A DNA stretch of 64,000 nt from Scyliorhinus canicula (lineage: Eukaryota), in assembly GCF_902713615.1 (NCBI RefSeq), contig NC_052158.1, positions 32,343,990-32,407,989 on the forward strand. Direction: 5' to 3'. Every line of letters starts with the position of its first letter. The stretch's first letter is position 1. The notes under the pieces are model-generated. The model was not told the origin of the DNA. It was given only the letters and a program-made list of their open reading frames with translations, and made no database searches. Shown piece by piece: positions 2,371-35,847 of this stretch. The position numbers and the translations under genes are program-made.

Positions 2371-2406
2371 ACCATATGATGGTGGGGACCTCTGGAGGAG
2401 ACCGAG

Positions 2407-5175: not shown

Positions 5176-5191
5176 AGACACCATCATATTT

Positions 5192-8040: not shown

Positions 8041-8064
8041 AACATTCAATTTCCTATCATCAAA

Positions 8065-9382: not shown

Positions 9383-9429
9383 TCAGTTATTTGTGGAGGA
9401 CATGGATGAAGAATCCCCATTACCAGAAG
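9383..9429 (-). CDS. MHC class I exon 7, Ser-rich tail TSGNGDSSSMSSTNN-stop
   Basis: Acceptor ctccttcctttaacag|, in-frame Ser-rich peptide, TGA at 9385-9383, then G|GTATGAG donor one base after the stop. Confidence 0.82.
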
Positions 9430-12400
9430 CTGTTAAAGGAAGGAGAGGCATTAAAAAAACTGTTCATTATTAGAGGCAGTGATAGTGCATGAGATAGAAG
9501 AGCAGAGATAAAGACAGAGAGAGAGAGACAGAGAATGAGAGAGACAAAGAGAGACAGAGACAGAACAGGGCAATCGAAAAAGGTTCTCACCCACACATAT
9601 TCTGATGGGGACACACACAGCAATTATCAGAGAATATCAGACACAGAATGAAGAATTATTTATACAGTTACACACAGATCCAGAGGGTATTTGATGATCA
9701 GCTTACTGTTTGTAGGATTGTAGCCTCTCTTCCCTCTCCCTGCAAAACAAGGAATGTTCAGTGAGTGATGAAACTGACAGAAAATCAGGGAGAGTCTGAA
9801 ACTTCGAGTGAAACGGACAGATGGACCATTCCTCACACTTAGTCCCCAGCCCGGAAAAGGGACCAACACCCCCACCTGGTCACAGTACCCACGCTCCTGC
9901 CTGAACATGGGACCCACACTGATCCCTAAACTTCTTTTCGAATCCGAGACCCTTTCCCACATTTCTGACTCTCTCTGTTTACCCTGATCCCTTTTCTCTC
10001 CCTATCCCAGCCCTGGGGCTCTTTCACCCACTGTGTGCTCCCCCCCACACCAAACTGAGACCCACAGACTGAGCCACCCTCACACTGGAATATTCCCTCA
10101 GGATCCCTCCAACACCCAGTGTGGAGCTGCTGTTTTCCCTCCAATTCCTACCTTTCTTGTTGTAGATTAAGACAGCTACAATGATGAGAGTGATGAGCAG
10201 CACCAGGATCCCGAGCACAATCCCGACGGTAACAGGAACCTGGGAGTGAGACTTCGGCCCTGTTAGAGAGAAAATCAGAGAGATGGTGAATCAGAGAGAG
10301 AAAATGTGAGCATCTGAATTTTAAAGACCTCGATTTGACCAACATCAGCCCTCTGTTTTGCTGAGAACCGAGATCCAGCCTGTCAACCTTTCCCTGATAC
10401 GTATACCCACTCATTTCTGGTAGCATCTCTGGAATTCATCTATACAGCCTCTCCTTGGCAGCACGGTAGCACGGGAATGGGACAACTCATCGCCGCCGAC
10501 TCATTGCCAGCCCAACTCATCGCCAGCCCAACTCATCGCCAGCCCAACTCATCGCCAGCCCAACTCATCGCCAGTCCAACTAAAAATTGAAATTCATGGT
10601 GTGCGCAATAAAAATTAATGGAGGTGAAAAGACTTATTTTTTGTTATGATAAATACTGCGTAAAAATTCAATAGGAATCCTTTCATTAAAATTTTGGACT
10701 ATCCTAAGAATGCGGTTATCAGTATCTAGGTATCTTTTTAATTTTGCTGGTGGTGCACTGCCAGCTATAAGCAATTCCAAATAACAGTCTCGTCCTTTTG
10801 GAACTTTTCTGAGTGCATTAATGAATTTCCATATTGTAGGATGTTCCATCCCTAATTCCATTTGTAGTCTTCTGTTTGCTGCTTCTGCACGGTTGTTGGT
10901 TCTGTCTTCATGATTTAAAGTTCGAACATACAAATTCCACATTTCCATTGGGAAGAGTGGGGCACGTCTGCTATTTCCGCGTCTGTTTAACCAACCTATA
11001 TAGTTGTTTTCGAGCCAATTCAGGATTGGCAAATACTCTGTAGATAATTCGTCAACTAAGGCATCATATAGGAATCTATATGTTCGACAGGGACAAATGC
11101 AAGAGCCAGTATCATCTTGACTTGTAACGAAAACTTGCTGTCGTTATTATAACGAGAAGTTAGACCCGAAGCCGCAATGTGCTTCTGCATATTTTGACTA
11201 AGGTGAAAGAAGCACCCTTTTAATTCTACGTTTGGAAATATTTCTTTGATTGCACTAAATGCCGCGAGTTCAAAATCACATACAATTGATTTTGGGTTTA
11301 CGGTGGGCTCAATTTCTTTTATCATTTCAAATAACCTTGAATATGTAACTTTTTGCTTGTTAGGTAAAAGAGCATAAAGTACTGGGATGACACCTCCGAA
11401 TTTTTGAGCCAGTACAATATAAACCTGAGAAAATAACTTCGGAGCTATCTTAAAGGTTCCATCTACATACCAAACTTCTGATGAAGCCTGTTGCAACCAA
11501 CTTCTCCTTCCAAACAGCAAGATTCTGTCTTCTCCGGGACCACTGTCTTTTAGTAAAAAAACTTCCTTCTGGTTTGGCTCCGTTTCGTAGGTCGCATATT
11601 CATCAGGGATTGCTAACTGATGAAGATCAATTGGGTCTGGCGGAGGGATGCTAATTTGATTCCGTTTCCAGTCTAATTGTTTTCTTCAGAGCAGACGCAC
11701 ACGGTAGTGATCCTTGTTCCGCTTGGGAAACATTCGCCAAAACTTCATTAATCAATACACTTGGGTTTTCCATTGACTCCTCGGCTCAGGTTTTAATTTT
11801 TGTAGTCGTCCTTGCCACTTCTATTCGTATTGGTGAAGAGTCATGGGTGTGAGTATTTATGAATTTCACTACGTTTCCAAATAGAACATAGAACAGTACA
11901 GCACAGAACAGGCCCTTCGGCCCTCGATGTTGTGCCGAGCAATGATCACCCCACTCAAACCCACGTATCCACCCTATACCCATAACCCAACAACCCCCCC
12001 CCTTAACCTTATTTTTAGGACACTATGGGCAATTTAGCATGGCCAATCCACCTAACCCGCACATCTTTGGACTGTGGGAGGAAACCGGAGCACCCGGAAG
12101 AAACCCACGCACACACGGGGAGGACGTGCAGACTCCGCACAGACAGTGACCCAGCCGGGAACTGAACCTGGGACCCTGGAGCTGTGAAGCATTTATGCTA
12201 ACCACCATGCTACCGTGCTGCCCAAATCTTGTGTGAATTCTTGCTTTGCATCTGCTGAGCTGTTCACATCGCCAAAACATCAAATCGCCTTCGGTTTTAC
12301 TGAATTTATCAAAAATGAACAAATATCCATTATGAGAAAACTTCTCTTTGCCTCGCTGACTTAAAATTTGCTCCATTGTAAAGGGTTTAAAATTGGAAGA

Positions 12401-15400: not shown

Positions 15401-18400
15401 TGAAGAACAGCTTCTTCCCTACTGCCATCAGGCTTATGAATGGACCTACGTCGCATTAAGTTGATCTTTTCTCTGCACCCGAGCTAACTGTAACTCTGCA
15501 ATCCCTCCTTCTTTCCCTATGTACAGTATGTGTTATCTGTACAGCATACAATAAACTATACTTTTCACTATATACTAATACTTGTGACAATAATAAATCA
15601 AATCAAATAAAGAAACACCAGGCACTGTCCATCCAGCAAAATCCCAGATACACCAGACACGGTCCATCCTGCAACATCCCAGGTTAGATCAGACCCTGTC
15701 GTACTGTAATATCACTGGACATACCGGGCCTGTTCCCCTGTACTATCCCAGGATACTCTAGGCTCTGTCCCTCCTATAATACCCCAGGGTACTCCAGATA
15801 CTGTCACACTAATATCACAAGGTACACTGTCCCTAGAGGATACACCAGGCACCGCCACTTCAGCAATATCCCAGATACACCAGCTACTATCCCTCCTGCC
15901 ATACTCCAGCATATACCAGGCACTATTCCTCCTTCAATATTCTAGATTACATCAGGCCCTGTCACACAGCAATATCCCAGGATATACCGGGACAATTTGT
16001 GCAGTAATTTCCCAAGATACACTGGGCCCTGACATACTGTAATATCCCAGGATACACTGGGCCCTGTCACACTGTAATATCCCAGGATAGTGTGGGCCCT
16101 GTCATACTGTAATATCCCAGGATAGTGTGGGCCCTGTCATACTGTAATATCCCAGGATACACTGGGCCCTGTCATACTGTAATATCCCAGGATACACTGG
16201 GCCCTGTCACACTGTAATATCCCAGGATAGTGTGGGCCCTGTCATACTGTAATATCCCAGGATAGTGTGGGCCCTGTCATACTGTAATATCCCAGGATAC
16301 ACTGGGCCCTGTCATACTGTAATATCCCAGGATACACTGGGCCCTGTCATACTGTAATATACCAGGATACACTGGGCCCTGTCATACTGTAATATCCCAG
16401 GATAGTGTGGGCCCTGTCATACTGTAATATCCCAGGATAGTGTGGGCCCTGTCATACTGTAATATCCCAGGATACACTGGGCCCTGTCATACTGTAATAT
16501 CCCAGGATACACTGGGCCCTGTCATACTGTAATATCCCAGGATACTCTGAGCCCTGTCATACTGTAATATACCAGGATAGTGTGGGCCCTGTCATACTGT
16601 AATATCCCAGGATAGTGTGGGCCCTGTCATACTGTAATATCCCAGGATACACTGGGCCCTGTCATACTGTAATATCCCAGGATACACTGGGCCCTGTCAT
16701 ACTGTAATATCCCAGGATACACTGGGCCCTGTCATACTGTAATATCCCAGGATACACTGGGCCCTGTCATATTCTAATATCCCAGGACACACTGAGCCCT
16801 ACATACGTAACATCTCAGGATATTTTCCGACTGTAATGTCCCTGTACATACTTAACCCTGTCGCACTGTATTATCTCAGGAAACACTGGGTGGTGTTATA
16901 TTGTAATAGCCCAGGATACACCGGGCCCTGGCCCTCCTATAATAGCCCAAGGTGCTCTGGACCCTGTCACACAAATATCTCAGGGTACACCGGCATGAGC
17001 TGGGATACACCAGGCCTTGCCCCTCTAATAATAAGAATATTAATAACAATCACTTATTGTCACAAGTAGGCTCCACTGAAGTTACTGTGAAAAGCCCCTA
17101 GTCACCACATTCCGGCCCCCCTCTAGCAATATCCCAGGATACATCCCAGGAAACTACAAAAGGTCATGAATGTAGCCCAATCCATCATGCAAACCAGCCT
17201 CCCATCCATTGACTGTCTACAATTCCCGCTGCCTCGGAAAGGCAACCAGCATAATTAAGGACCCCACGCACCCCGGGCATACTCTCTTCCACCTCTTCCG
17301 TCAGGAAAAAATACAAAAGTTTGAGGTCACGCACCAACTAACTGAAGAACAGCTTCGTCCCTACTGCCATCAGGCTTTTGGACCTACTTCGTATTAAGTT
17401 GATCTTTTCTCTGCACCCTAGCTAACTGTAACTCTGCTATCCCTCCTTCTTTCCCTATGTACAGTATGCGTTGTCAGTACAGCATACAATAAACTATACT
17501 TTTCACTATATACTAATACATGTGACAATAATAAATCAAATCAAATAAGGAAACACCAGGCACTGTCCATCCAGCAAAATCCCAGATACACCAGACACGG
17601 TCCATCCTGCAACATCCCAGGTTACATCAGACCCTGCCGTACTGTAATATCACTGGACATACCAGGCCTGTCCCTCTGTACTATCCCAGTATCTCTAGGC
17701 TCTGTCCCTCCTATAATACCCCAGGGTACTCCAGACACTGTCACACTAATATCACAAGGTACACTGTCCCTAGAGGATACACCAGGCACCGCCACTCAGC
17801 AATATCCCAGATACACCAGCTACTATCCCTCCTGCCATACTCCAGCATACACCAGGCACTATTCCTCCTTCAATATTCTAGATTACATCAGGCCCTGTCA
17901 CACAGCAATATCCCAGGATATACCGGGACAATTTGTGCAGTAATTTGCCAGGATACACTGGATCCTGTCATACTGTAACATTCCAGGATTCAATGGGCCC
18001 TGTACATCTTATAATATCCCAGGATTCTATGGGCACTGTCATGCTGTAATATCCAAAAATACCCAGGCCCTGATCTGCTATAATGCACAAAGATACACCA
18101 GATACTGTCCTACTCTAATATCTCATGATACATTGGATCCTCTCGACCTGTAATATCCCAGGACACACTGGGCCCTGTTATACTCTAATACCCCAGGATA
18201 AACCAGGCCCAGTCCTACCGTAATATCCCATGAAACTGAATCCTGTTGCACTGCAATACTCCAGTATTGCCCTGTCCCTGCTTTTATATCCCAGGATACA
18301 CTGGGCCCTGTCATACTATAATATGACAGGATATAACAGGCTCTATCATTCTTCCAATGTCCCAGGATACACCGGGCCCTGTCCCTGCTGTAATACCCCA

Positions 18401-21400
18401 GCCTACACCAGGCCCTGACCACCTGGGTGTCATGTCAGAAACATGGAGGAAAAGATTGTATTTATTATGATTATGCCCTGAACACTCCTTTTTTCCTCAT
18501 CCTTGTCCCCTGTTTATTGTGAGATTGAAAAAAGTAGATTTTGTGAAATCCCTCGTGATTCTGTTTTCACCTTGCCCAGAATTTGCGGTGCAGTTATTCA
18601 TAGAGGATTGGAACACACCAAATTTATGGGCTGGGGGAAAAATGACACCATTTATAAAGAGGAATCTCAGAATATTTTAAAAATTAATGTTCTGTTTGTA
18701 AATGAGTAGTGAGCAGGGAAATCAGGGCAGTTTTCATTGACCACCCTCACCGTCCACAACATGGGGTAAACCAGGCCCTGTCCTAATGTAATACCCGAGG
18801 ATACACTGCCCTGTCATACTGTAATATCCCAGCGTACCCCGACCTACTATACTATCCAATGATACACCAGAAACTGTCCTACCATAAATTCCCATGATTC
18901 ACTGGATCTTGTCAATCTGTAGTATCCCAGGATACACTGGGACATGTTGTACTGTAATACCCCAGGGCTGCATAGCGCCACAGTGGGTAGCACTGTTGCC
19001 TCACAGTGCCAAGGACCCGGGTTCAATTCTGTAATTGGGTGACTGTCTATGTGGAGCTTGTACATTCGTCCCACGTCTGCGCGGTTTCCTCCAGGTGCTC
19101 TGGTTTCCTCCCACAATCCAAAGCTGTGCAGTCGGTGGATTGACCAGGCAAAATTCCCCATTAGTGTCCAAAGGTTAAGTGGGGTGTGGTGAACCACTGT
19201 GCACCTGTATTAGGGGATGTAAGGTAGGACCTGTACTACAAGTTCGCCGGTAGCCCCTGCCGGCTGGCTCCGCCCGGTAGGAGTATAAATATGCGTGTCC
19301 TCCATTGATCTGCCATTTTGCCAGCTGCAGCAAGAGGCCACGCATCTGACTGCAATAATGTCACAGTTGTACCCAACCTTAGTCTTTGTGCAATTGATCG
19401 TGCATCATGGGGTTATGGAGAAAGGGCAGGGAGTGGGCCTAGGTCAGGTGCTTCTGCTCTGTGGCAATTCAATGCTTCTTCTACGATACACTGGGCCGTG
19501 TTGTGCTGTAATATCTCAAGATAAACCAGGCTCTTTCCTCCCGTAATAACCCCAAGATGCACTGTGCCGTGTCATATCACTTTACAATATCCCAGGGTAC
19601 ATCTGGCCTGTCCTGTTATACAGCTCCATGCCTTGCCCCTCCAACAATATCCCAGATACACCAGAAAGTGTCCACCCTGCAACACTGCAGGATACAACAA
19701 GCACTAACCCTCCTGTAATATCTGTAGCCACCTGGGGTGACCACTGCCCAACACAAAATGGAAGATTGCAAGGAATGCAGGGAAATTGGACATGTTATAA
19801 AGCAAGCAGCTTGCAAAGCGCTTGTATATTCAGTCTACTGCAGAAACCAGTTTTGACTGCTGCAGAAAGCAGACAGCACTATGAAAAGAAAACAGTTAGC
19901 ATACTAATGAGGCGATACCAGGCGATCCCCAGAAACAATGGAAACAAGTTAAACACAGATCGATACATTCAATGGAAGGCCAGACTTTTTGGCGCCAAAG
20001 AAGCCCAAAACAATAAGTCCCGAGAACCGCCCCAGTGATCAAGGAATTGCCCCGCTATTGGGGAATTCAAATCAATCGATTGGGAAGAGACCCAATCGAT
20101 TGCGGGAGTATAGAGGGTCCGCCCAGGTGGGCACAAGACCCTGAGATGAGTATAAGACAGAGACCGCGACCCCAGCTCTCTCTCTCTCTGCCAGCCTCTC
20201 CTTGACCAGCCAGCCCCCCCAGCAGAACACCGTTGCAGCAGAAGAACCTTAAGGAGGAGAGGTCTGGACAGAAGCCGCCAGCAACTAAGTCACAATGTAC
20301 GCTGCGGGAATAGACACTCCTGGCCCCTTTTGTCCATAACTACTGGAAGCCTGCGGACCCAGGACAAATCTAGAAGCCGTTGTTCCCTGATCCGGCAGTC
20401 CCCTTGTCCAGATAAGTATTTGGCCTATTAGTGGTGGGATTAGCCTAGTCTTATAGTTTATATGCATGATTAGTAGATTACTGTAATATAATAAATGTGT
20501 CTTGTGTGAACTTACTAATTGGTGTATGTTTTTATTGCTTTGAACTTGACCTTGAAACTTGTGGCAGTATCTTAACGATACCTGGCGACTCCAAAGCTAA
20601 GTAACGAAACAGAGGCAAATTGAGTTTTAAGCACACTCACCCAGAACGAGCAACATAGCCCAGTATACAGCAGGCTCTGTTGTAATGTAACATCCAGGAA
20701 TATATCTGGACCTTTCATACAGTAATTTTCAGGGTTCACTGGATCCTGTCAGACTGTAACATTCCAGTATGACAGGATCCAGTGCACCCTGACAAATTAC
20801 TGTATGAAAGGTCCAGATATATTCTTGGATGTTTCATATACATTCCAGGGTACAACAGGCCCTGTTTTACTGTAATATCCCAGGTGGGGCATGTTGCACA
20901 GTAAATCCCCGGACACACAATCACTGTCCTCCAATAGAGGCTCCATGGTATGTTAGAGTTCAATATTTATTTGCTCTCTGTGTCCTGGGCTACAGCCTGA
21001 ACTGGTGAACAGCTCAGCACTGACCCTCCCTCCTGTGATCCTAATCTGAGGCTGTGTCCCTCTAACAGTGAGAAATGGTCTTACCATAAATCACCACCAG
21101 TGTCTCATTCAGTCCGCTGTGTTCCACCCGACAGGAATACTCAGCCTGGTCCTCCGGATCAAACTCCACCCATTTCCGGATCTGGTAGGTACTGTCGTGA
21201 TTGGGTAAGATCCCACTAGACAGGGTCTCACCAATCACAAATCCATTCCTGCACAGATTCACATCGATGGCTTGAGGGTAAAACGCGGTGACGACACAGG
21301 ATAGCCGGTTGGAATCACCCAGACGGGTAAATGACACGAAAGGGGCAACTGAGAGAGAAACAAAGAGGAATCAGTGTTGGAAACTCGAGAGAGAGAACCG

Positions 21401-24400
21401 CAGGCATACCCCCTTCACCGACTCAGTCCGCCCCTCACTCACCGACTCTCAGTCCCCCCCCCCACTCACCGACTCTCAGTCCCAGCTCACTCACCGACTC
21501 TCAGTCCCTCCCTCACTCACCGACTCTCAGTCCCCCCCCTCACTCACCGACTGTCAGTCCCCCCCTCACTCACCGACTCTCAGTCCCCCCTCGCTCACTG
21601 ACACTCAGTCCCCCCCTCACTCACTAACTCTCAGTCCCTCCCTCACTCACCGACTCTCAGTCCCCCCTCGCTCACCGACTCTCAGTACCCCCCTCACTCA
21701 CCGACTCTCAGTACCCCCTCACTCACCGACTATCAGTCCCCCCTCACTCACTGACTCTCAGTCTGCCCCTCACTTACCGACTCTCAGTCCCCCCTCACTC
21801 ATCAACTCTCAGTCCCCCCTCACTCACCGACTCTCAGACCCCCCCTCTCTCACCGACTCAGTCCCCCTCTCACTCACCGACTCTCGTTCCCCCCCTCACT
21901 CACCGACTCTCAGTCCCTCCCTCACTCATCAACTCTGTCCCCCCTCACTCACCGACTCGCAGTCCCCACCTCACTCACCGACTCTCAGTCCCCCCTCACT
22001 CACCGACTCTCAGTCCCCCCATACTCAGCGACTCTCAGTCCCCCCTCACTCACCGACTCTCAGTGCCCCCCCACTCACCAACTCTCAGTAATCCCCTCAC
22101 TCACCGACTCTCAGCCCCCCCATCACTCACCGACTCTCAGTCCCTCCCCTCACTCGCCGACTCTCAGTCCCCCCTCACTCACCGACTCTCAGTCCAACCC
22201 CTCACTCACCGACTCTCAGTCCCCCCCTCACTCACCGACCCTCAGTCCCCCCCACACTCACCGACTCTCTGTGCCCCCCCTCACTCACCGACTCTCAGTC
22301 CCCCCCCTCACTCACCGACTCTCAGTCCCCCCCCTCACTCACCGACTCTCAGTCCCCCCTCACTCACCGACTCTGCGTCCCTCCTCACTCACCGAATCAC
22401 AGTCTCGCCCCACACTCACCGACTCAATCCACCCCTCACTCACCGACTCTCAGTCGCCCCCCTCACACACCGACTCTCAGTCCCTCCCTTGATCATCGCC
22501 TCTCAGTCCACCCCTCACTCACCGACTCTCAGTCCCCCCCTCACTCACCGACTCTCAGTCCCCACTCACTCACCGACTCTCAGACCCCCCTCATCTCACC
22601 GACTCAGTACCCCTCTCACTCACCGACTCTCAGTTGCCCCCCCTCACTCACCGACCGCAGTCCCCACCTCACTCACCGACATCTCAGCCCCCCCCCTCAC
22701 TCACCGACTCTCAGTCCCCGCCCCATCACTTCACCGACTCTCAGTCCCCCCTCACTCACCGTACTCTCAGTCATCCCCCTCATTCACCGACTCTCAGTCC
22801 CCCCTCACTCACCGACTCTCAGTACCCCCCTCACTCACCGACTCTCAGTCCCCCCCCTCACTCACCGACTCTCAGTCCCCCCCTCACTCACCGACTCTCA
22901 GTCCCCCCCCTCACGCACCGACTCTCAGTACGCCCCCTCACTCACCGACTCTCAGTCTCCCCCCCTCACTGACCGACTCTCAGTCCCCACCCCTCACTCA
23001 CCGACTCTCAGTCCCCCCCAACTCACCGATTCTCAGTCCCCCCCTCACTCACCGACTCTCAGTCCCCCCCTCACTCAACGACTCTCAGATCCCCCCTCTC
23101 TCACCGGCTCTCAGTCCCTCCCTCGCTCACCGACTCTCAGTCATCCCCCTCACTCACCGACTCTTAGTCACACCTCGCTCACCGGCTCTCAGTCCCCCCT
23201 CACTCACCGACTCTCAATCTCCCCTCACTCACCGACTCACAGTCCCCCCTCACTCACAGACTCTAAATCCCTCCCTCACTCACCGACTCTCAGTCATCCC
23301 CCTCACCCACCGACTCTCAGAGCCCCCCCTCACTCACCGACTCTCAGTCCCTCCCTCACTCACCGACTCTCAGTCCCCCACTCACTCACCGACTCTCAGT
23401 CCCCCCCCCTCACTCACCGATTCTCAGTCCCACCCTCACTCACCAACTCTCAGTCCCCCCTCACTCACCGACTCTCAGTCCCTCCCTCACTCACCGACTC
23501 TCAGTCCCCCCCCTCACACGCCGACTCTCAGTCCCCCCCTCACTTACCGACTCTCAGTTCCCCCCTCACTCACCGATTCTCAGTCCACCCCTCACTCACC
23601 GACTCTCAGTCCCCCCCTCACTCACCGACTCTCTGTCCCCCCCCCACTCACCGACTCACAGTCCCCCCTCACTCACCGACTCTCACTCCCCCCTCACTCA
23701 CCGACTCTCAGTCCCCCCCCCCTCACTCACCGACTCTCAGTCCCCCCCCTCGCTCATCGACTCTCAGTCCCCACCCCTCACTCACCGACCCTCACTCCCC
23801 CTCAGTCACCGACTCACAACCCCCCCCCTCACTCAACGACTCTCAGTCCCTCCCTCACTCACCGACTCTCAGTCCCGCCTGACTCACCGACTCTCAATCC
23901 CCCCCTCACTCACAGACTCTCAGTCCCCCCCCTCACTCACTGACTCTCAGACCCCCCTCACTCACCGACTCTCAGTCCCCCCCCTCACTCACCGAATCTC
24001 AGTCGCCCATTCACTCACCGACTCTCAGTCCCCCCTCACTCACCGCCTCTCAGTCACTCCCTCACTCACCGACTCTCAGTCCCCTCTCACTCACCGATTC
24101 TCAGTTCCCCCTCACTCACCGACACGCAGTCCCCCCCCTCACTCACCGACTCTCAGTCCTCGCCCTCACTCACCGATTCTCAAACCCCCCCTCACTCACC
24201 GATTCTCAGTCTTCCCCCCCTTACTCACCGACAGTCCCCCCCTCGCACATCGACTCTCAGTCCCTCCCTCACTCACCGATTCTCAGTCTTCCCCCCCTTA
24301 CTCACCGACAGTCCCCCCCTCGCTCATCGACTCTCAGTCCCTCCCTCACTCACCGACTCTCAGTCCCCCCCCTCACTCACCGACCCTCACTCCCCCTCAG

Positions 24401-27400
24401 TCACCAACTCACAACCCCCCCCCTCACTCAACGACTCTCAGATCCCCCCTCACTCACCGGCTCTCAGTCCCCCCTCACTCACCGACTCTCAATCCCCCCT
24501 CACTCACCGACTCTCAGTCCCTACCCTCACTCACCGACTCTCAGTCCCTCCCTCACTCACCGACTCTCAGTCCCCCCTCACTCACCGACTCTCAGTCCCC
24601 CCCTCACTCACCGACTCTCAGTCCCTCCCTCACTCACCGACTCTCAGTCCCCCCTCACTCACCGACTCTCAGTCCCCCCTCACTCACCGACTCTCAGTCC
24701 CCCCCTCACTCACCGACTCTCAGTCCCCCCCTCACTCACCGACTCTCAGTCCCCCCTCACTCACCGACTCTCAGTCCCCCCCCTCACTCACCGACTCTCA
24801 GGTCCCCCCTCACTCACCGACTCTCAGTCCCCCCCCTCACTCACCGACTCTCAGTCCACCCTCACTCACCGACTCTCAGTCCCCCCTCACTCACCGACTC
24901 TCAGTCCCTCCCTCACTCACCGACTCTCAGTCCCCCCCCACTCACCGACTCTCAGTCCCCCCCTCACTCACCGACTCTCAGTCCCCCCTCACTCACCGAC
25001 TCTCACTCCCCCCCCTCACTCACTGACTCAGTCCCCCCCTCACTCACCGACTCTCAGTCCCCCCCTCACTCACCGACTCTCAGTCCCCCCCTCACTCACC
25101 GACTCTCAGTCCCCCCCTCACACACCGACTCTCAGTCCCCCCCCTCACTCACCGACTCTCAGTCCCCCCCCTCACTCACCGACTCTCAGTCCCCCCCTCA
25201 CACACCGACTCTCAGTCTCCCCCCTCACTCACCGACTCTCAGTCACCCCCTCACTGACTCTCAGTCCCCCCCTCACGCACTGACTCTCAGGCCCCCCCTC
25301 ACTGACTCTCAGTCCCCCCCTCACTCACTGACTCTCAGTCCACCCCTCACTCACCGACTCTCAGTCCCTCCCTCACTCACCGATCTCAGTCCCCCCCTCA
25401 CTCACCGACTCTCAGTCCCCCCTCACACCGACTCTCAGGCCCCCCTCACTCACCGACTCTCAGTCCCCCCCCTCACTCACTGACTCTCAGTCCCCCCCCT
25501 CACTCACTGACTCTCAGACCCCCCCTCACTCACCGACTCTCAGTCCCCCCTCACTCACCGACTCTCAGTCCCCCCCCTCACTCACCGACTCTCAGTCCCC
25601 CCCTCACTCACCGACTCTCAGTCCCTCCCTCACTCACCGACTCTCAGACCCCCCTCACACGCCGACTCTCAGTCCCCCACTCACTCACCGATTCTAAGTC
25701 CCCTCCTCAGTCACCGTCTCTCAGCCCCCAACACTCAACGACTCACAGACCCCTCCTCACTCACCGGCTCTCAGTCCCCCCTCACTCACCGACTCTCAAT
25801 CCCCCCTCACTCACCGACTCTCAGTCCCCCCCACTCACCGACTCTCAGTCCCCCCTCACTCACCGATTCTCAGTTCCCCCCTCACTCACCGACTCTCAGA
25901 CCCCCTCCTCACTCACCGTCTCTCAGTCCCCCCTCGCTCAGTGACTCTCAGTCCCCCCCTCACTCACCGACTCCTCCCCCTCTCATCGACTCAGTCCCCC
26001 CTCACTCACCGACTCTCAGTCCTCCCTCACTCACCAATTCTCAGTCCCCTCCCTCACTCACCGACTCTCAGTCCACCCCCTCACTCGCCGACTCTCAGTC
26101 CCCCCCCCTCACTCACCGACTCTCAGTTCCCCCCTCACTCACCGACTCTCAGTCCCCCCCTCACTCACCGACTGAGTCCCCCCCCCTCACACGCCGACTC
26201 TCAGTCCCCCACTCACTCACCGACTCTTAGTCCCTCCCTCACTCACCGATTCTCAGTCCCCCCCTCATTCACCGACTCTCAGTCCCCCCCCCTCACTCAA
26301 CGACTCTCAGACCCCCCCCCACTCACCGACTCTCAGTCCCCCCCTCACTCACCGCCTCGCAGTCCCCCCCTCACTCACCGACTCTCCGTCCCCCCCTCAC
26401 TCACCGATTCTCAGTCCCCCCTCACTCACCGATTCTCAGTCTCCCCCCCCTAACTCACCGACTCTCAGTCCCCCCCTCACTCACCGATTCTCAGCCCCCC
26501 CTCACTCACCGACTCTCAGTTCCCCCCTCACTCACCGAATCTCAGTCCCCCCCTCACTCACCGACTCTCAGCCCCCCTCACTCACCGACTCTCAGTTCCC
26601 CCCTCACTCACCGACTCTCAGACCCCCCCCCCCACTCACCGACTCTCAGTCCCCCCTCACTCACCGACTCTCAGTCCCCCCCTCACTCACCGACTCAGTT
26701 CCCCACTCGCTCATCGACTCTCAGTCCCCCCCTCACTCACCGACTCTCAGTCCCCCCTCACTCACCGACTCTCAGTCCCCCCCTCACTCACCGACTCTCA
26801 CTCCCCCTCACACCGACTCTCAGTCCCCTCCTCTCTCACCGACTCTCAGTCCCCCCCTCACTCACCGACTCTCAGTCCCGTCCCCTCACTCACCGACTCT
26901 CAGTGCCCACTCACTCACCGCCTCTCAGCCCCTCCCTCACTCACCGACTCAGTCCCACCCTCACTCACCGACTCTCAGTCCCCCCCTCACTCACCCGACT
27001 CTCCGTCCCCCCTCACTCACCGATTCTCAGTCCCCCCCTCACTCACCGATTCTCAGTCCCCCCCTCACTCACCGATTCTCAGTCTCCCCCCCCCCTAACT
27101 CACCGACTCTCAGTCCCCCCTCACTCACCGACTCTCAGCCCCCCCCTCACTCATCGACTCTCAGTCCCCCCCTCACTCATCGACTCTCAGTCCCCCCCCC
27201 TCATTCACCGACTCTCAGTCCCCCCCCTCACTCACCGACCCTCACTCCCCCTCACTCACCGACTCACAACCCCCCCCCTCACTCAACGACTCTCAATCCC
27301 CCCTCACTCCGACTCTCAGTCCCACCCTCACTCACCGACTCTCAGAACCCCCCTCACTCACCGACTCTCAGTCCCCCTCCTCACTCACCGACTCTCAGAA

Positions 27401-30400
27401 CCCCCCTCACTCACCGACTCTCAGTCCCCCTCCTCACTCACCGACTCTCAGTCCCCCCCTCACTCACCGACTCTCAGTCATCCCCCTCACTCACCGACTC
27501 TCAGTCCCCCCCTCACTCACCGACTCTCAGACCCCCCCTCACTCACCGACTCTCAGTCCCCCCCTCACTCACCGACTCTCAGTCCCCCCCTCACTCACCG
27601 ACTCTCAGTCCCCCCTCACTCACCGACTCTCAGTCCCCCCTCACTCACCGACTCTCAGTCCCCCCCTCACTCACCGACTCTCAGTCCCTCCCTCACTCAC
27701 CGACTCTCAGTCCCCCCTCACTCACCGACTCTCAGTCCCCCCCCTCACTCACCGACTCTCAGTCCCCCCTCACTCACCGACTCTCAGTCCCCCCCTCACT
27801 CACCGACTCTCAGTCCCCCCTCACTCACCGACTCTGTCCCCCCCTCACTCACCGACTCTCAGTCCCCCCCTCACTCACTGACTCTCAGTCCCCCCCTCAC
27901 TCACCGACTCTCAGTCCCCCCCTCACTCACCGACTCTCAGTCCCCCCCTCACTCACCGACTCTCAGTCCCCCCCTCACTCACTGACTCTCAGTCCCCCCC
28001 TCACTCACTGACTCTCAGACCCCCCCTCACTCACCGACTCTCAGTTCCCCCCCCCACTCACCGACTCTCAGTCCCCCCCTCACTCACCGACTCTCAGTCC
28101 CCCCCTCACACGCCGACTCTCAGTCCCCCACTCACTCACCAATTCTCAGTCCCCCCCTCACTCACTGACTCAGTCCCCCCCCTCACTCATCGACTCTGTG
28201 CCCCCCTCACACACCGACTCTCAGTCCCTCCCTCACTCACTGACATTCCCCCCCTCACTCATCGCCTCTCAGTCCCCCCCTCACTCACCGACTGAGCCCC
28301 CCCTCACTCACCGACTTTCAGGCCCCCCCCTCACTCACCGACTCTCAGTCCCCCCCCTCACTCACCGACTCTCAGTCCCCCCTCACTCCGACTCTCAGTC
28401 CCCTCCTCTCTCACCGACTCTCAGTCCCCGCCTCACTCACCGATTCTCAGTCCCCCCCCTCACTCAGCGACTCCCCCTCTCATCGACTCAGTCCCCCCTC
28501 ACTCACCGACTCTCAGTCCTCCCTCACTCACCAATTCTCAGTCCCCCCCCCTCACTCACCGACTCTCAGTCCTCCCCCTCACTCGCCGACTCTCAGTCCC
28601 CCCCCTCACTCACCGATTCTCAGTCCCCCCCTCACTCACCGATTCTCAGTCCCCCCCTCATTCACCGACTCTCAGTCCCCCCTTCACTCAAAGACTCTCA
28701 GCCCCCCCCCCACTCACCGACTCTCAGTCCCCCCTCACTCACTGACTCAGTCCCCCCCCTCACTCATCTACTCTGTGCCCCCCTCAATCACCGACTCTCA
28801 GTCCCCCCCTCACTCACTGACTCAGTCCCCCTCCTCACTCATCGACTCTGTGCCCCCCTCACTCACCGACTCTCAGTCCCCCCCTCACTCACTGACTCAG
28901 TCCCCCCCCCTCACTCATCGACTCTGTGCCCCCCTCACTCACCGACTCTCAGTCCCCCCCTCACTCACTGACTCAGTCCCCCCCTCACTCATCGACTCTG
29001 TGCCCCCCTCACACACCGACTCTCAGTCCCTCCCTCACTCACTGACATTTCCCCCCCTCACTCATCGCCTCTCAGTCCCCCCCTCACTCACCGACTGAGC
29101 CCCCCCTCACTCACCGACTCTCAGGCCCCCCCTCACTCACCGACTCTCAGTCCCCCCCTCACTCACCGACTCTCAGTCCCCCCTCACTCCGACTCTCAGT
29201 CCCCTCCTCTCTCACCGACTCTCAGTCCGCCCCCTCACTCACCGATTCTCAGTCCCCCCCTCACTCACTGACTCTCAGACCCCCCCTCACTCACCGACTC
29301 TCAGTTCCCCCCCCCACTCACCGACTCTCAGTCCCCCCCTCACTCACCGACTCTCATTCCCCCCCCTCACACGCCGACTCTCAGTCCCCCCTCACTCACC
29401 GATTCTCAGTCCCCCCCTCAGTCACCGTCTCTCAGCCCCCCCCTCACTCAACGACTCTCAGACCCCTCCTCACTCACCGGCTCTCAGTCCCCCCCTCACT
29501 CACCGACTCTCAGTCCCCCCCTCACTCACCGACTCTCAGTCCCTCCCTCACTCACCGACTCCCAGTCCCCCCCTCACTCACCGACTCTCAGTCCCCCCCT
29601 CACTCACCGACTCTCAGTCCCCCCCTCACTCACCGACTCTCAGTCCCCCCTCACTCACCGACTCTCAGTCCCCCCCTCACTCACCGACTCTCAGTCCCCC
29701 CCTCACTCACCGACTCTCAGTCCCCCCCTCACTCACCGACTCTCAGTCCCCCCTCACTCACCGACTCTCAGTCCCCCCCTCACTCACCGACTCTCATCCC
29801 CCCCTCACTCACCGACTCTCAGTCCCCCCCTCACTCACCGACTCTCAGTCCCCCCCTCACTCACCGACTCTCAGTCCCCCCTCACTCACCGACTCTCAGT
29901 CCCCTCCCTCACTCACCGACTCTCAGTCCCCCCTCACTCACCGACTCTAGTCCCCCCTCACTCACCGACTCTCAGTCCCCCCCTCACTCACCGACTCTCA
30001 GTCCCCCCTCACTCACTGACTCAGTCCCCCCCCTCACTCATCGACTCTGTGCCCCCCTCAATCACCGACTCTCAGTCCCCCCCTCACCCACTGACTCAGT
30101 CCCCCCCCTCACTCATCGACTCTGTGCCCCCCTCACTCACCGACTCTCAGTCCCCCCCTCACTCACTGACTCAGTCCCCCCCCTCACTCATCAACTCTGT
30201 GCCCCCCTCACTCACCGACTCTCAGTCCCCCCCTCACTCACTGACTCAGTCCCCCCCCTCACTCATCGACTCTGTGCCCCCCTCACACACCGACTCTCAG
30301 TCCCTCCCTCACTCACTGACATTCCCCCCCTCACTCATCGCCTCTCAGTCCCCCCCTCACTCACCGACTGAGCCCCCCCTCACTCACCGACTCTCAGGCC

Positions 30401-33400
30401 CCCCCTCACTCACCGACTCTCAGTCCCCCCCCTCACTCACCGACTCTCAGTCCCCCCTCACTCCGACTCTCTGTCCCCTCCTCTCTCACCGACTCTCAGT
30501 CCGCCCCCTCACTCACCGATTCTCAGTCCCACCTCACTCACCGACTCTCAGTCCCCCCTCACTCACCGCCTCTCAGTCCCTCCCTCACTCACCGACTCAG
30601 TCCCCCCCTCACTCACCGACTCTCAGTCCCCCCTCACTCACCGATTCTCAGTCCCCCCTCACTGGACTCTCATTCCCGCCCCCTCAGTCACCGACTCTCG
30701 GTCCCCCCTCACTCACCGACTCTCAGTCCCCCCTCACTCGACTCTCATTCCCGCCCCCTCAGTCACCGACCCTCAGTCCCACCTCACTCACCGACTCTCA
30801 GTTCCTGATGGCCGTACTCCATATATTTCGTCAGCCACTCAAAACACTCTTCCTCCAGGTAATGTTTCCATCCCAAGTTGTTGGCCGTGTTCTGGTCCCA
30901 CTTATTTTTGATGCTCTCTCCCCATGGGACAGGGGTCACCCACACCATGTGCTCCTTGTCGAAGCTGATAAAATCCTGTCCGTCCCATGCCCTCTGGTGG
31001 AACCCACTCCTGGTTCCATCATCGCTCAGGTCACAACCGAACTTCGTTTGGTATGTGTGGATCCCTGTGAATTAGACACAGAGTCCTTGAGTCACGGTGA
31101 CAATGAGATATGACAGCCACTGCACAGACAACCTAAACAGCCTCCCATCCATCATGGCACAGTGCCACAGTGGTTGGCACTGCTGCCTCACAGTTCCAGG
31201 GACACGGGTTCAATTCTGAACTTGGGTGACTGTGTGGAGTTTGCATGTTCTCCTTGTGTGGGTCTGTGTGGGTTTCCTCCAGATGCTGTGGTTTCCTCCC
31301 ACTGTCCAAAGATGTGTAGGTTAGATTAATTTGTCATTCTAAAGTGCCCCTTTGTGTCCAAAGGTGGTTAGGTTACAGTGTTGCGGTGCTAGGGTGAGGG
31401 AGTAGACCTAGGTAAGGTGTTCCTGTCACAGGTGTAAGCAGACTGGATGGCCTGAATGGCCTCATGCTGTACTGTAGGGATTCTATGATCCCAATATCCT
31501 CCCAGCTTCTCCCAATTCCCATCTAGAACCCTCAACTTACACGAAGAGGCCTGATGGTGGGACCGTAAAGACTTACCTCCCGACTGGTTGGACCGGGCCA
31601 TGAGGAATTGAAAATAGACTTTGATGTTCTGCTGCTGATCCATTGCAAGCACAGTCTTCCGTTCCCAGGACTCACGTCCCTCGCTCTGTACCATCCACTG
31701 CTCCCGAGGGATCAGTTCTTTCCGATCGCCGTCATACATAATAAACTGAACACCGTCCACATAACCCACAACCAAAAACTCTGGGAAACCGGGGATCGGA
31801 GTCATAGAAGTGAGGAAATAGCGGAGAGAGTGAGAGTCTGAAATACATAGAGAGAGATATCAGGGCATGAAACCCAAAAACACCAACACCCACACACACA
31901 GACATCTGGGTATGAACACCAAAACACCAACACCCATACAGAGAGACATCAGGGCATGAACCCAAAAACACCAACACCCACACACACAGACATCTGGGTA
32001 TGAACACCAAAGCACCAACACCCATACAGAGAGACATCAGGGCATGAACCCAAAAACACCAACACCAATCTGGGTATGGTGATCATCTTCCAAAATTCTA
32101 TAGGCTCTGGAGCAGTTTGATTGGATTTGTTTATTGTCACGTGTACCGAGGTACAGTGAAAAGTATTGTTCTGCCTGCAGTTCAGACAGATCATTGCATG
32201 CGTGGAAAAAAAAACATCGGACATTAATAAATACACATTTATACAGTTGCTACAGATTGGAGGGTGGCAAATGTAATCACACCATTAAAAAAGAGAGAGA
32301 TAAAAGAAAGGGACAATGACAGACCAGTTAGCCTCACAAAAGTAGTGGGGAAAATGCTTGAGTCTATTATAAAAGACATGATGACAGAACATTTGGAAAG
32401 CATTTACCAATACATAACGCTGGCAAAACTAAAGCCCCAGCGTTATGTATTGGTACGGTACGTGAACTGGCTGAGATAGGAAGCAGAGATTGGGAATAAA
32501 TCGGTCTTTTCTGATTGGCAGCCAGTGACTGGCGACAGCAGGGATCAGCGCTTAGTCTCCAGCTATTCATGATATCAATAAATGACCTGGATGAGGAAAC
32601 CAGATGTAAAATTTTGAAGTTTGCTAATTACACAACACTGGATGGAATTGTGAGTGGTGAGGACAATGCAGGGAGGTATCAAGGTGATTGAGACATGTTG
32701 AGTGAGTGGGCAAACACATGGCAGACACGGAATCTGAGGATACAGGGTAGCCCATGTAGGACTGAGATGAGGAAATATTTCTTCACTCAAAGGGTAGTAA
32801 ACCTGTGGAATTCTCTATCACAGAAGGGTGTGGAGACCAAGTCACTGAATGTATTCAAGAAAGAATGTGATGAATGCAGGAATTACAGATACATTGTATT
32901 ATATGTATTGGTGTAGTAAGGGTTAAAAGCCTGGGTTAATGTGTGCATGACTGCTGCGGTAGTGTTTTTAAAAAAATCCTGGTTTGCAAGACAGCGAGGC
33001 TTTTTGAGAAGCAGAGATGCAATTAAAGCATCATAAAAGCTTGGGCTAATGGATTTTCCTTTGGATTAAGGGAGTTCCCTGTGTTGCATTTATTTTGATA
33101 CCTTTGTGGTCAGCTAGTAAATGATGAACTAATGGGATGAGCCAGATTAGCAGGCATTTTAGCAGAGAAGCAGAGATTGTTCAGTCTGGTGCTGGAAAGC
33201 GAAACAATAAGACGTTTCAGCCAGAGATCCTGGCTCCTTGTCAACTGCAATGGTTACATCTTCAAAGAATTCCAACGGAATTGTCAAGCATGATTTCCCC
33301 TTCATAAATCCATGCTGACTCAGACTGATCCTGCCACTGCTTTCGAAATGTTCTGCTATAAAGTCCTCGATAATGGATTGAAGAATTTTCCCCACGACCG

Positions 33401-35847
33401 ATGTTAGGCTTACTGGTCTATAATTCACTGCATTCTTGATACCTCCCTTATTGAATATTGGATTGACATGAGCTACCCTCCAATCTGCAGGGACTGTTCC
33501 AGAGTCTGTAGGATCCTGGAAGATGACCACCAGTGCATCCCCTATTTCCAGAGCCACCTCCTTCAGCATCTGGGATGCAGATTCTGAGGCCCTGGGGATT
33601 TATCCGCCTTCCATAACATCAATTTTCCCAGCACCATTTTCATACTAATGTTGATCTCCCTCTGTTCTTCCCTCTCACTAAACCTTTCATTCTCCAACAT
33701 TTCTGGTATCTGATTTGTGTCCTTGCTTGTGAAGACAGAACCAAAGTATGTATCCAATTGCTCAGCCATTTCTTTGACCCTTATTATGCATTCCTTGTTT
33801 CTGTGTGTAGGGGGCCTACATTTCTCTACCAATCTCTTTGTCTTCACATATCTATTGAAACTCTTTGTGTCAATCTTTGTGTTCCCTTTGTGTACTGTAC
33901 TTTCCCCTTCTTTATCAATCCCTTTGTCCTTATTTGCTGAATTCTAAACTGTTCCCTATCCTCAGACCTATTATTTTTCTTGGCCAATCTGTATGCTTCT
34001 TTCTTGGATTGGCTACGACTTCTAATTTCCTTTGTAAGCCATGGATTGACCCTCTTACCCATTTTGCTTATGTGCCAGACAGGAATGAGCAGTTGCTGCA
34101 GTTCCCCCATGCGTTCCTTGAATGTTTGCCATTGCCTATCCACTGCCATCCCTTTAAGTAACACTCTCCAATCTATCAAGGCCAACTCATGCCTCATATC
34201 TTCATAGTTTCCTTTATTAAGAATCAGCACCCTAGTCTCCGAATCAACTACTTCACTCTCCATCTTCTATCATGTTATGGTTGCCCATCCCCAAGGAATC
34301 TTGCACAACCAGATTGGCAACGATTCCCTTCTCATTACACAATACCCAGTCTAAGATGGCCTGCTCGCTAGTTGGTTCCTTGACATATTGGTCAAGAAAA
34401 CTATCCCATATACCTCCAGGAATTCCTCCTCTATGGCTTTGTGGCTAAATTGATTTGCCCAATCTATGTGAAGATTAAAATCACCCATGATCACCAATAT
34501 TCCCTTATTACATGCATCTCTAATTTTGTGATTAATGCCATTCCCAACATCACCACTGCAGTTTAGGGGTCCATATATGACACCTACTAATGCTTTTTGC
34601 CCCTTAGTATTTCTCAACTCTACCCATACAGATTTCACATTGTCAGAGCTAATATCCTTTCTCACTATTGTGTTAATTTCCTCTTTAACCAGCAGTGCCA
34701 CACTACCACCTTGACCTTCATGTCTGTCCTTCCTAAATACTGAAAACCCTGGGATATTCAGTTCCCATCTCTGGTCACCCTGCAGCCATGTCTCCGTAAT
34801 CCCAATTATATCATACCCATTTATATCTATCTGCAAAATTCATTCATCAACTTTAGTGCAAATGCTCTGTGCATTAAGCCACCGAGCCTTTAAGTTTGTC
34901 TTTTTCACATTGTTTGTCTTGCTCCCAATATTTTTCTCTTTTGCCCTGTTTGAATTTTGCCCTTGGTTTCTCCACCTATCACTTTTCACTGTTGGGGATG
35001 GAATTTGGAGCACATAAGGAATATGCAGTTTTGATACAAATAAAGCAGGATCGAATTCCATAAAAGATCAGGCCAAATTGCCTCCTCCTGTATTCCTCCA
35101 TCTGTGTGTCTCTGTCTTCACTTTCCAGCCCATTGTCACTGCCCACAGTTCCCTCACAATGCAGAGTTTCCTTCCCTTTACAGACCCAGTACCCAGCTTG
35201 GCATTGCCCCTCTCACACCCACTCGCTCACTGACCCAGGGGTAATGCCCCAGTACCCAGCCTGGCTCTATCCCTCTCACACCCCATCGCTCACTGACCCA
35301 GGGTTAATGCCCCAGTACCCAGCCTGGCTCTGCCCCTCTCATACCCCATCATTCACTGATCCAGGGTTAATGCCCCAGTACCCAGCCTGGCTCTGCCCCT
35401 CTCATACCCCATCACTCACTGACCCAGGGTTAATGCCCCAGTACCCAGCCTGGCTCTGTCCCTCTCACACCCGCATCACTCACTGACCCAGGGTTAATGC
35501 CCCAGTACCCAGCCTGGCTCTGTCCCTCTCACACCCCATCACTCACTGACCCAGGGTTAATGCCCCAGTACCCAGCCTGGCTCTGTCCCTCTCACACCGC
35601 ATCACTCACTGACACAGGGTTAATGCCCCAATACCCAGCCTGGCTCTGCCCCTCTCACACCCCATCACTCACTGACACAGGGTTAATGCCCCAGTACCCA
35701 GCCTGGCTCTGCCCCTCTCACACCCCATCACTCACTGACCCAGGGTTAATGCCCCAGTACCCAGCCTGGCTCTGCCCCTTTCACACCCCATCACTCACCT
35801 GCAGACACCTCCGCACACAGAAGGAGCAGCACTATCTGTCCAATCAT
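9383..35847 (-). CDS. UAA: MHC class I heavy chain gene, 7 coding exons, 344 aa (UAA-lineage-like, probably non-classical)
   Basis: Manual splicing of seven exons (49+261+273+264+108+33+47=1035 nt), all GT-AG and phase 1, gives an uninterrupted leader-alpha1-alpha2-alpha3-TM-cytoplasmic protein. The lineage name is inferred from resemblance to shark classical-type class I, not from a search. Confidence 0.93.
9707..9739 (-). CDS. MHC class I exon 6, cytoplasmic (GRGKRGYNPTN)
   Basis: Acceptor ttgttttgcag| and donor A|GTAAGC flank a 33-nt phase-1 exon carrying the conserved cytoplasmic Tyr. Confidence 0.85.
10152..10259 (-). CDS. MHC class I exon 5, connecting peptide and transmembrane helix
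   Basis: Acceptor ctctctaacag|, then GPKSHSQVPVTVGIVLGILVLLITLIIVAVLIYNKK, then donor AAG|GTAGGA. Confidence 0.93.
10634..12376 (-). pseudogene. FLYWCH-MULE transposase pseudogene
   Basis: ORF fragments 12376-12224, 11882-11786, 11520-11056 and 11032-10634 form one collinear DDE transposase. Confidence 0.88.
11883..12223 (-). mobile_element. HE1-type SINE inside the MULE transposase
   Basis: Interrupts the FLYWCH domain; short ATTTGG-like duplication at the junctions. Confidence 0.92.
12829..13125 (+). mobile_element. SINE whose head (starting ~10457) was split by the MULE insertion
   Basis: ggcagcacggtagcac at 10457-10472 continues as cggtagcacaatgg... after the transposon. Confidence 0.85.
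13130..13690 (-). mobile_element. CR1 RT fragment
   Basis: Degenerate [10 protein letters not shown] and KFADDT motifs on the minus strand. Confidence 0.7.
13810..14330 (+). mobile_element. Gypsy gag remnant
   Basis: SFVTDLRLKAQSYNFADLQDSRVKDQL resembles vertebrate Gypsy capsid. Confidence 0.6.
14330..14787 (-). mobile_element. Gypsy LTR (TGTGGTGAAT...) plus the start of gag
   Basis: LTR-like ~300 bp followed by MEAALKPGLLELDP on the minus strand. Confidence 0.55.
15195..15610 (+). mobile_element. Rex1/Babar-type LINE 3' end (second copy at ~17150-17550)
   Basis: SRCLGKATSIIKDPTHPGHTLFHL motif and AATAAATCAAATCAAAT tail. Confidence 0.75.
16010..16795. repeat. 35-bp satellite core (gggccctgtcatactgtaatatcccaggatacact), ~22 homogeneous copies
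   Basis: Two main variants (gatacact and gatagtgt); degenerate copies of the same unit run from about 14790 to 20940. Confidence 0.95.
19185..19407 (+). mobile_element. Solo LTR inserted in an HE1-type SINE
   Basis: TG...CA termini with 5-bp TSD TGGGG on both sides; the SINE continues on each side. Confidence 0.8.
19723..20655 (+). mobile_element. Probable solo LTR (~930 bp) in the degenerate 35-bp satellite
   Basis: TG...CA termini, TATA-like and AATAAA-like signals; the satellite phase resumes after it (imperfect 4-bp TSD). Confidence 0.55.
21085..21348 (-). CDS. MHC class I exon 4, alpha3 Ig C1-set domain
   Basis: Acceptor tttctctctcag|, then VAPFVSFTRLGDSNRLSCVVTAFYP...LPNHDSTYQ...YSCRVEHSGL, then donor G|GTAAGA. 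C1-set FYP and YxCxVxH motifs are present. Confidence 0.97.
21410..30802. repeat. ~9.4-kb tandem array, ~27-bp unit CTCACTCACCGACTCTCAGTC(C)n, filling intron 3
   Basis: Continuous tandem unit, roughly 350 copies by length/unit estimate, with variable C-run length. The unit equals the reverse complement of the exon 3 end plus donor. Confidence 0.98.
30792..31064 (-). CDS. MHC class I exon 3, alpha2 domain (not in the supplied ORF track)
   Basis: Acceptor aattcacag|, then GIHTYQTKFGCDLSDDG...WDGQDFISFDK...IKNKWDQ...HYLEEECFEWLTKYMEYGHQELRV, then donor G|GTGAGT. The C101/C164 pair, H93, Q96, D119 and D122 are present. Confidence 0.97.
31152..31490 (+). mobile_element. Older HE1-type SINE in intron 2
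   Basis: Diverged head and core. Confidence 0.8.
31577..31837 (-). CDS. MHC class I exon 2, alpha1 domain
   Basis: Acceptor tatgtatttcag|, then DSHSLRYFLTSMTPIPGFPEFLVVGYVDGVQF...LMARSNQSG, then donor G|GTAAGT. SHSLRY, GYVD and the NQS glycosylation sequon are class I hallmarks. Confidence 0.97.
31845..32068. repeat. Minisatellite (~41-bp subunits in an ~83-bp dimer) abutting the exon 2 acceptor
   Basis: Alternating gagagacatcagggcatgaacccaaaaacaccaacaccca and cacacacagacatctgggtatgaacaccaaaacaccaacaccca units. Confidence 0.85.
32320..32866 (+). mobile_element. Collapsed CR1 RT fragments
   Basis: RPVSLTKVVGKMLESII and FFTQRVVNLWNSL motifs. Confidence 0.75.
33240..35070 (-). mobile_element. 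CR1 ORF2 pseudogene (endonuclease and RT N-terminus) in intron 1
   Basis: GITETWLQ, MGDFNLH, KSPGP and NYRPVSLTSVVGK motifs across frameshifted ORFs. Confidence 0.9.
35175..35798. repeat. 63-bp minisatellite, ~10 copies, abutting the exon 1 donor
   Basis: Unit cccagggttaatgccccagtacccagcctggctctgcccctctcacaccccatcactcactga; it produces the 21-aa repeated shadow ORFs. Confidence 0.95.
35799..35847 (-). CDS. MHC class I exon 1, signal peptide MIGQIVLLLLCAEVSA
   Basis: ATG in context GCAACAATGA, hydrophobic 16-aa leader ending VSA, followed by donor GCAG|GTGAGT; joins exon 2 in frame (G+AC=Asp). Confidence 0.9.

Follow-up and report, generated by a model that had tools for sequence, protein, structure and literature searches.

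Intron 3 of a catshark MHC class I gene is filled by a minisatellite of its own splice donor, and the main assembled transcript uses the most upstream copy

How can an intron that consists almost entirely of copies of its own 5' splice site be removed precisely, and does such a repeat serve the gene or is it merely tolerated? This question is raised by a major histocompatibility complex (MHC) class I heavy chain gene of the small-spotted catshark Scyliorhinus canicula. The gene lies on the minus strand of the 64,000-nt stretch of contig NC_052158.1 analysed here (the window; all coordinates are positions in it), and its intron 3 (30791..21349, minus strand) is filled by a 26-bp minisatellite (21415..30802, minus strand) in which the donor of exon 3 recurs. 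The initial annotation, made from the letters of the sequence, had described this intron as tandem copies of its own 5' splice site that start at the real donor. Analysis with Tandem Repeats Finder (TRF) and counting of 20-mers lead to the same description, and the splice-donor array filling intron 3 is confirmed as real.

The length of intron 3 is 9443 bp, as given before, with GT at 30791-30790 and AG at 21350-21349, and it is excised precisely in RNA. TRF finds a single array at 21415-30802 with a period of 26, 364.6 copies, 84% matches and 6% indels, and a separate segmentation of the array yields 364 units, with GTRAGT kept in 279 of them. The array proposed by the initial annotation therefore stands, and its count of about 350 copies is replaced by 364 units. 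On the sense strand, the unit is made of a G-run (mostly 6-7 bases, with lengths varying from 6 to 8 across the units), the last 11 exon bases ACTGAGAGTCG and the donor GTGAGTGAG, which agrees with the earlier reading of the sequence. The opening 11 bases of the array are the final 11 bases of exon 3 (alpha2), and exon 3's own donor comes next. With its start at 30802, the array takes in 11 bases of exon 3 and includes the authentic 5' splice site; the 20-base context of this site from -11 to +9 (ACTGAGAGTCG/GTGAGTGAG, the slash marking the cleavage site) occupies 30783..30802 on the minus strand, and both the sequence and the RNA contigs place the cleavage between 30792 and 30791. Donor-reiterating, or exon-boundary, minisatellites are recognized by head-to-tail units of 10-100 bp and by a first monomer lying across the exon-intron border, and the catshark array shows every sequence-level feature of this class.

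Intron 3 contains GTGAGT 288 times and the exact 20-mer of the real donor (-11 to +9) 139 times. With up to 2 mismatches allowed, the 20-mer has 292 matches as compared to 0 expected by chance, and the 200 matches listed are all inside the array. Perfect units are evenly distributed along the array (10-19 per full kb bin) and show no gradient in these per-kb bins, giving no clear growth polarity, and the pseudo-donors are spread evenly over all three phases. G makes up 55% and C 8% of the sense strand of the array (GC skew, 0.73). Read-through at the real donor encodes V-G-E-stop, as translation past the donor had indicated before. The unique sequence at the 3' end of the intron (21349..21414, minus strand) holds a branch-like CACTGAT with its A at -23, a pyrimidine tract and the AG. 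Here the CTGAT and the pyrimidine tract noted by the initial annotation are retained, and the length of the unique part is corrected from about 60 to 66 bp.

The usage of these donors can be followed in assembled RNA. Complete exon 3 is present in numerous small sets of contigs which stem from at least nine studies, and four sequencing runs, including the RNA runs X10 and X11 from two studies, were aligned to 30600-31900. X10 and X11 give one contig each (614 and 647 nt in length, with depths of 15 and 135, respectively), which contains exons 3 and 2 with zero differences. Both contigs omit 31065-31576, a segment running from GT to AG on the gene's strand, and therefore represent spliced RNA. 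Beyond 30792 both of them carry 30 bases with a single match in the window, at 21319-21348, where exon 4 begins. The contigs thus join 30792 to 21348, meaning that the dominant transcript uses the first donor together with the normal acceptor and that all 9443 bases are removed. The main assembled transcript uses the most upstream donor, and the 30792-21348 junction, seen in the RNA of two studies, is new evidence. The sole raw RNA run (X23) placed 17 reads only and yields no quantitative junction data.

No retained or extended form is assembled in the sequence-distinct units 2-3 (30732-30775), where the depth is 0 in X10 and 0.14 in X11 as compared to 15 and 135 on the exons. Array-like contigs of X11 have a depth of at most 61, as against 135 on the exons, in spite of the hundreds of unit copies, which indicates that array RNA does not accumulate. 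The first intact pseudo-donor is located at 30716, at +76 nt. The last intact pseudo-donor (21434..21453, minus strand, an exact 20-mer match) offers an intron of 94 nt up to the acceptor, yet a different donor is used in the assembled RNA. Bypassing of this last copy is compatible with exon definition, and likewise with the 5'-to-3' 'scanning' demonstrated in human F7 (PMC1557585). Exon sequence precedes the real donor only, and a G-run precedes every other copy. G-runs act as silencers in exons and as enhancers in introns, and the difference between exon sequence and G-run upstream of the donors may add to the asymmetry in favour of the first donor.

The remaining sequence of the array is in line with its smooth removal. 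Scanning for acceptor-like sites (Y6+..YAG) finds none in the array, where pyrimidines reach at most 11 per 20-nt window, and the real acceptor is the sole one in intron 3. In the absence of any such site inside the array, pseudo-exons and recursive splicing are not possible there. Recursive-splicing (ratchet) sites were accordingly rejected, no juxtaposed 3' and 5' splice sites being present inside the array. Intron 3 is also free of AATAAA and ATTAAA, so the suppression of intronic polyadenylation by U1, suggested by the initial annotation, would have no signal to suppress.

Alignment of 362 units to the core gives a mean conservation of about 95% at the donor positions +1 to +6 and about 93% at the exon-derived positions. 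The least conserved positions of the unit are -11, -8 and the two G's (-1 and +1) after the CpG cytosine. Donor positions are neither protected nor purged, and there is no selection signal either way and none for U1 binding. A role of the array as a decoy or U1 sink which tunes splicing, as speculated earlier, is unsupported; it gains nothing from the junction from 30792 to 21348, from the lack of any contig in units 2-3 or from donor positions without excess conservation. A possible masking of the pseudo-donors was considered as well. Folding of eight perfect units gives a z of -3.4 with an empty centroid, and folding of the exon/array border gives a z of -1.3; RNA structure hiding the pseudo-donors was rejected, as the folds contain no defined masking structure. 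Canonical G-quadruplex motifs (loops 1-7) are absent from the array, which has only 77 candidates with a long central loop. Long plus-strand open reading frames (ORFs) rich in Ser, Pro and Thr run across the array and were rejected as genes, being a by-product of the stop-free 26-bp unit; antisense ORF queries (array plus exon 3 antisense, and an array ORF of 360 aa) have no match in the protein collection searched.

Repeats of this kind are known from human genes. Donors reiterated by a minisatellite, with use of the most upstream site, have been described in F7, IFI6, CBS, LMNB2 and PDGF (Borensztajn et al. 2006, PMC1557585). Copy numbers are 5-9 of a 37-bp unit in F7 IVS7, 26 donor sites in IFI6 (6-16) and 15-20 in CBS (PMC1557585). 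The reiterated human donors are normally silent and the most upstream one is chosen, which for F7 has been explained by the 'scanning' mentioned above; the next one or two donors are sometimes used, and the second and third donors of IFI6 and CBS are constitutive (PMC1557585). Like in these five human genes, the first catshark monomer spans the exon-intron border and is followed by identical pseudo-donors, the use of which would usually truncate the protein. The catshark array differs in its size, with 364 copies (139 identical over 20 bases) in contrast to the 5-26 human copies. It also differs from IFI6 and CBS in that the two copies closest to its real donor carry mutations and the assembled RNA contains no alternative junction.

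The closest match to the catshark array is the variable number tandem repeat (VNTR) in intron 18 of human ABCA7, which has a 25-bp unit including the donor of exon 18 and alleles between about 0.3 and about 10 kb in length, with a maximum of 9.7 kb (De Roeck et al. 2018, PMC5954066). In ABCA7 the second donor is used at about 2%, and longer alleles are accompanied by lower expression and more skipping of exon 19 (PMC5954066). The two arrays are alike in unit size and maximal length, in their location directly after an exon and in the dominance of the canonical first donor. However, the human array is C-rich in its reference description, polymorphic and with a measured effect of length, whereas the catshark array is G-rich on the sense strand, adds 11 exon bases to the unit, fills the intron almost completely and is known from one assembly. 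The catshark array therefore belongs to a type of repeat with human precedents, and it exceeds most described cases in size.

A second donor-reiterating minisatellite is present in the same gene, at the start of intron 1 (35185..35798, minus strand). It consists of about 10 copies of a 63-bp unit (TRF) starting with GTGAGTGATGGGG. This array starts at the first intron base (35798) and keeps GTGAGT in 7 of its 10 units, and RNA contigs join exon 1 to exon 2 from its first donor. Units containing GTRAG are not significantly enriched among the minisatellites of the window (4 of 18 versus 1.9 expected, P = 0.12).

Taken together, we regard a tolerated, neutrally expanded exon-boundary minisatellite as the likely explanation of the intron 3 array, and the reservation of the initial annotation that it may equally be neutral slippage holds. 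A 26-bp duplication over the exon 3/intron 3 border, comprising the 11 exon bases, the GTGAGTGAG donor and the G-run, would have multiplied to 364 units, with replication slippage and unequal exchange as the presumed mechanisms, and intron 3 would have grown in this way from probably about 100 bp to 9.4 kb. The splicing machinery would commit to the first donor after exon 3, either by exon definition or by F7-like 'scanning'. A G-rich array which has neither a pyrimidine tract with AG nor a poly(A) hexamer cannot give rise to pseudo-exons or premature 3' ends, and the final 66 bases keep their branch site, pyrimidine tract and AG unaltered. If a downstream copy were used, the in-frame TGA three codons past the exon would be reached, and such a transcript would be expected to undergo nonsense-mediated decay (NMD). 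We read the array as tolerated because the first donor is used, no acceptor or poly(A) signal is present in the array and the 3' end of the intron is intact.

Some observations weigh against this reading. Among the first five pseudo-units, 4 are donor-dead as compared to 23% overall; the dead early units comprise one with GTGACT, one with a deleted GT and a 78-bp duplicate of these two. Selection against competitors close to the real site could be the reason, which would mean constraint and not function (P roughly 0.01-0.05, weak); the statistic is weak because the 78-bp higher-order duplication inflates the count. It is the nearest copies that are used alternatively in IFI6 and CBS (PMC1557585) and in ABCA7 (PMC5954066). 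In addition, of the about 12 arrays of this gene, which has 7 donors in 26.5 kb, 2 start no more than 12 bases from a donor (P ~0.003, post hoc), which hints that seeding of arrays at donors is non-random. Since contigs lose rare isoforms, minor use of pseudo-donors, skipping of exon 4 and low-level retention are also possible.

The first rival to a tolerated array that has to be weighed is an effect in cis through its length, where long alleles would lower expression or alter the splicing of flanking exons, for example by skipping of the alpha3 exon or by a switch to the next donor and subsequent NMD. This could happen if hundreds of sites were loaded with U1 and hnRNP H/F, if transcription were slowed, or if R-loops or G-quadruplexes formed on the G-rich non-template strand. 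The ABCA7 VNTR, with the same architecture and similar sizes, provides a precedent in its length-dependent expression and skipping and its second donor used at about 2% (PMC5954066), and the GC skew, the 77 long-loop G-quadruplex motifs, the 279 strong donors and the mostly inactivated nearest pseudo-donors of the catshark array point in the same direction. However, runs of several studies show the gene to be expressed, with correct splicing, the canonical short-loop G-quadruplex motif is absent, the donor positions show no excess conservation and array RNA stays at a depth of at most 61 versus 135 on the exons, and we consider a cis effect unlikely.

It is considerably less probable that the array acts as a hotspot of recombination or gene conversion between the alpha1/alpha2 and the alpha3/transmembrane exons, where it would shuffle class I paralogues. 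G-rich minisatellites are classical recombination hotspots, and the gene probably belongs to a multicopy lineage (PMC10751288). The depth of DNA contigs over the array bins ranges from 90 to 14683 as compared to about 3-6 on unique sequence, and as these values exceed the expected share of this array they suggest further copies of the unit elsewhere in the genome. Depths of 14683 and 1903 for the array unit would place it probably at other loci; against this, summed contig depth is not a copy number.

The least probable of the alternatives, and one to which we give very little weight, is that the array is real and its length or internal order is an artefact of assembly, by expansion or collapse. 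A stretch of 9.4 kb of 26-bp units is hard to assemble, and G-runs of 6-8 bases vary as long-read errors would. On the other hand, the units have diverged from one another (84% matches), and no exact internal repeat is longer than 173 bp, which does not resemble assembly stutter. The window has no N's, an independent short-read DNA contig (run X1, 30773-31195) crosses the exon 3/array border, and the 26.5-kb span of the RefSeq model agrees with the window. Short-read contigs break inside the array, and its length is given as assembled.

The gene which carries this tolerated array is intact, with leader, MHC_I alpha1 and alpha2, C1-set alpha3, transmembrane and cytoplasmic exons in an open frame. 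All seven coding exons could be located in the window, on its minus strand, with zero internal stops. The coding part of exon 1 (35799..35847) encodes the leader peptide MIGQIVLLLLCAEVSA and was placed by tblastn of XP_038673430 and by sequence, the RNA contig end at 31840 matching 35802-35831. Exon 2 (31577..31837) encodes alpha1 (Pfam MHC_I, 1.3e-14; RNA joint 31063>31576, cut +1). Exon 3 (30792..31064), which encodes alpha2 (Pfam MHC_I, 2e-23) and ends in ...GAACTGAGAGTCG, is covered by RNA contigs over 30792-31063 with 0 differences. The immunoglobulin C1-set domain alpha3 is encoded by exon 4 (21085..21348; Pfam C1-set, 1.5e-14), the start of which is the RNA contig end at 21319-21348. 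Exon 5 (10152..10259) encodes the connecting peptide and the transmembrane segment and was identified by exact peptide matches to XP_038673430. The cytoplasmic exon 6 (9707..9739) was found by tblastn and peptide match to the same protein and by sequence, and the coding part of exon 7 (9383..9429, with the stop codon TGA at 9385-9383) by peptide match and sequence.

The product of the gene is identical to the S. canicula RefSeq protein XP_038673430 (344 aa, 'class I histocompatibility antigen, F10 alpha chain-like', GCA_902713615.2); the translated alpha1, alpha2 and alpha3 exons are found unchanged within it, and its RefSeq gene range of 26.5 kb agrees with the window. A second class I gene was sought in the window by tblastn and none was found. 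A second annotated class I model of 345 aa covers the whole 46-kb locus (GCA_902713615.2) and overruns the ends of the gene, and it is probably a chimera or read-through between neighbouring class I genes.

A nonclassical shark class I lineage, distinct from the classical UAA, was reportedly first described by Bartl et al. in 1997. XP_038673430 is 70% identical to Heterodontus O19480 and 63% identical to Ginglymostoma O19479, while its identity to Triakis UAA, Chiloscyllium IA and the nurse shark 6LUP chain is only 47-55%. The lineage names of these accessions are those which we take to apply to them, partly with PMC12562908. These pairwise identities suggest that the gene belongs to the multicopy nonclassical UBA-type class I lineage (PMC10751288; PMC12562908).

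The end of alpha2 bears on the direction in which the array arose. In this gene alpha2 ends in ...ELRV followed by VAP, as it does in one S. canicula paralogue, in S. torazame and in Mustelus asterias, where the gene range is only 7.4 kb; the end is ELSV in Heterodontus, and other sharks have ELR or ELK plus one residue. As this alpha2 end is common to several shark class I proteins, the exon end is ancestral and the array is derived from it, and not the reverse. In the whale shark (Rhincodon typus), the model P0014 (EukProt) ends after alpha2 in ...ELEVGERGR, reading into an intron 3 that starts with GTGAGAGGGGG. On the sequence of this model, a donor with a following G-run could be an old feature at the start of intron 3. 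Introns of this type apparently mislead gene prediction.

Other repeats are found around the exons. A 45-bp minisatellite at 3899-4911 (minus strand), downstream of the class I stop codon, has a unit with CCG/GTGGGT, similar to the F7 donor, and is G-rich on the gene's strand. It begins about 30 bases past CAG/GTAATT and is a possible further donor-associated array. Between 0.4 and 1.3 kb past the stop codon, at 8076-8962 (minus strand), about 31 copies of a 28-bp unit form an array that contains GCTGGTG and has a G-rich sense strand. G-richness on the sense strand of the gene is shared by the arrays at 3899, 8076, 10483, 21415, 31855 and 35185. Intron 4 (10.8 kb) contains, at 15955-18417, several arrays of a 35-36-bp unit (...GGGATATTACAG...), with 25 copies at 15955-16822, and single copies of this unit are scattered over 17000-21000. 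On the plus strand, the minisatellites at 41889-42689 (33 bp x 23) and 45134-45522 (39 bp x 10) have units with CTGTGAGC including a donor-like GTGAGC, and no exon was identified beside these two.

Dispersed elements are also present. The intron 2 stretch 31128-31347 has a DNA contig depth of about 20,000-77,000 versus about 3-6 on unique sequence, and its depth is also high in RNA runs; it is probably a very abundant interspersed repeat resembling a short interspersed nuclear element (SINE). Long ORFs at 33159-34836 (minus strand) and 39129-40307 have an endonuclease/reverse-transcriptase and integrase-like look, by which the former appears to be a fragment of a long interspersed nuclear element (LINE) in intron 1 and the latter a retroelement upstream of the gene.

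For the choice of splice sites, the locus amounts to a natural experiment, with 139 identical and 279 GTRAGT sites in 9.4 kb facing one acceptor. It extends the rule that the most upstream donor wins from the 5-26 copies of human genes to hundreds, and it indicates that a short vertebrate intron can grow roughly 90-fold with the gene remaining unbroken. The repeat may trip up gene prediction, as in the whale shark class I model, and the length of the array, if polymorphic, could mark or modify expression in a multicopy MHC class I family. A bolder idea, which we regard as doubtful, is that the catshark genome has a lineage-specific tendency to amplify G/GTGAGTGA-Gn 5' splice sites into kilobase arrays, with two introns of this gene as cases, possibly caused by slippage or by R-loop-linked instability at donors that are G-rich on the non-template strand. 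If true, catshark splicing would settle on the first donor among hundreds of identical ones spread over 9 kb, with the last intact copy only 94 nt from the acceptor; such loci would probe the choice of 5' splice sites naturally and on a large scale, and they would represent a recurrent form of intron expansion that is new as a class.

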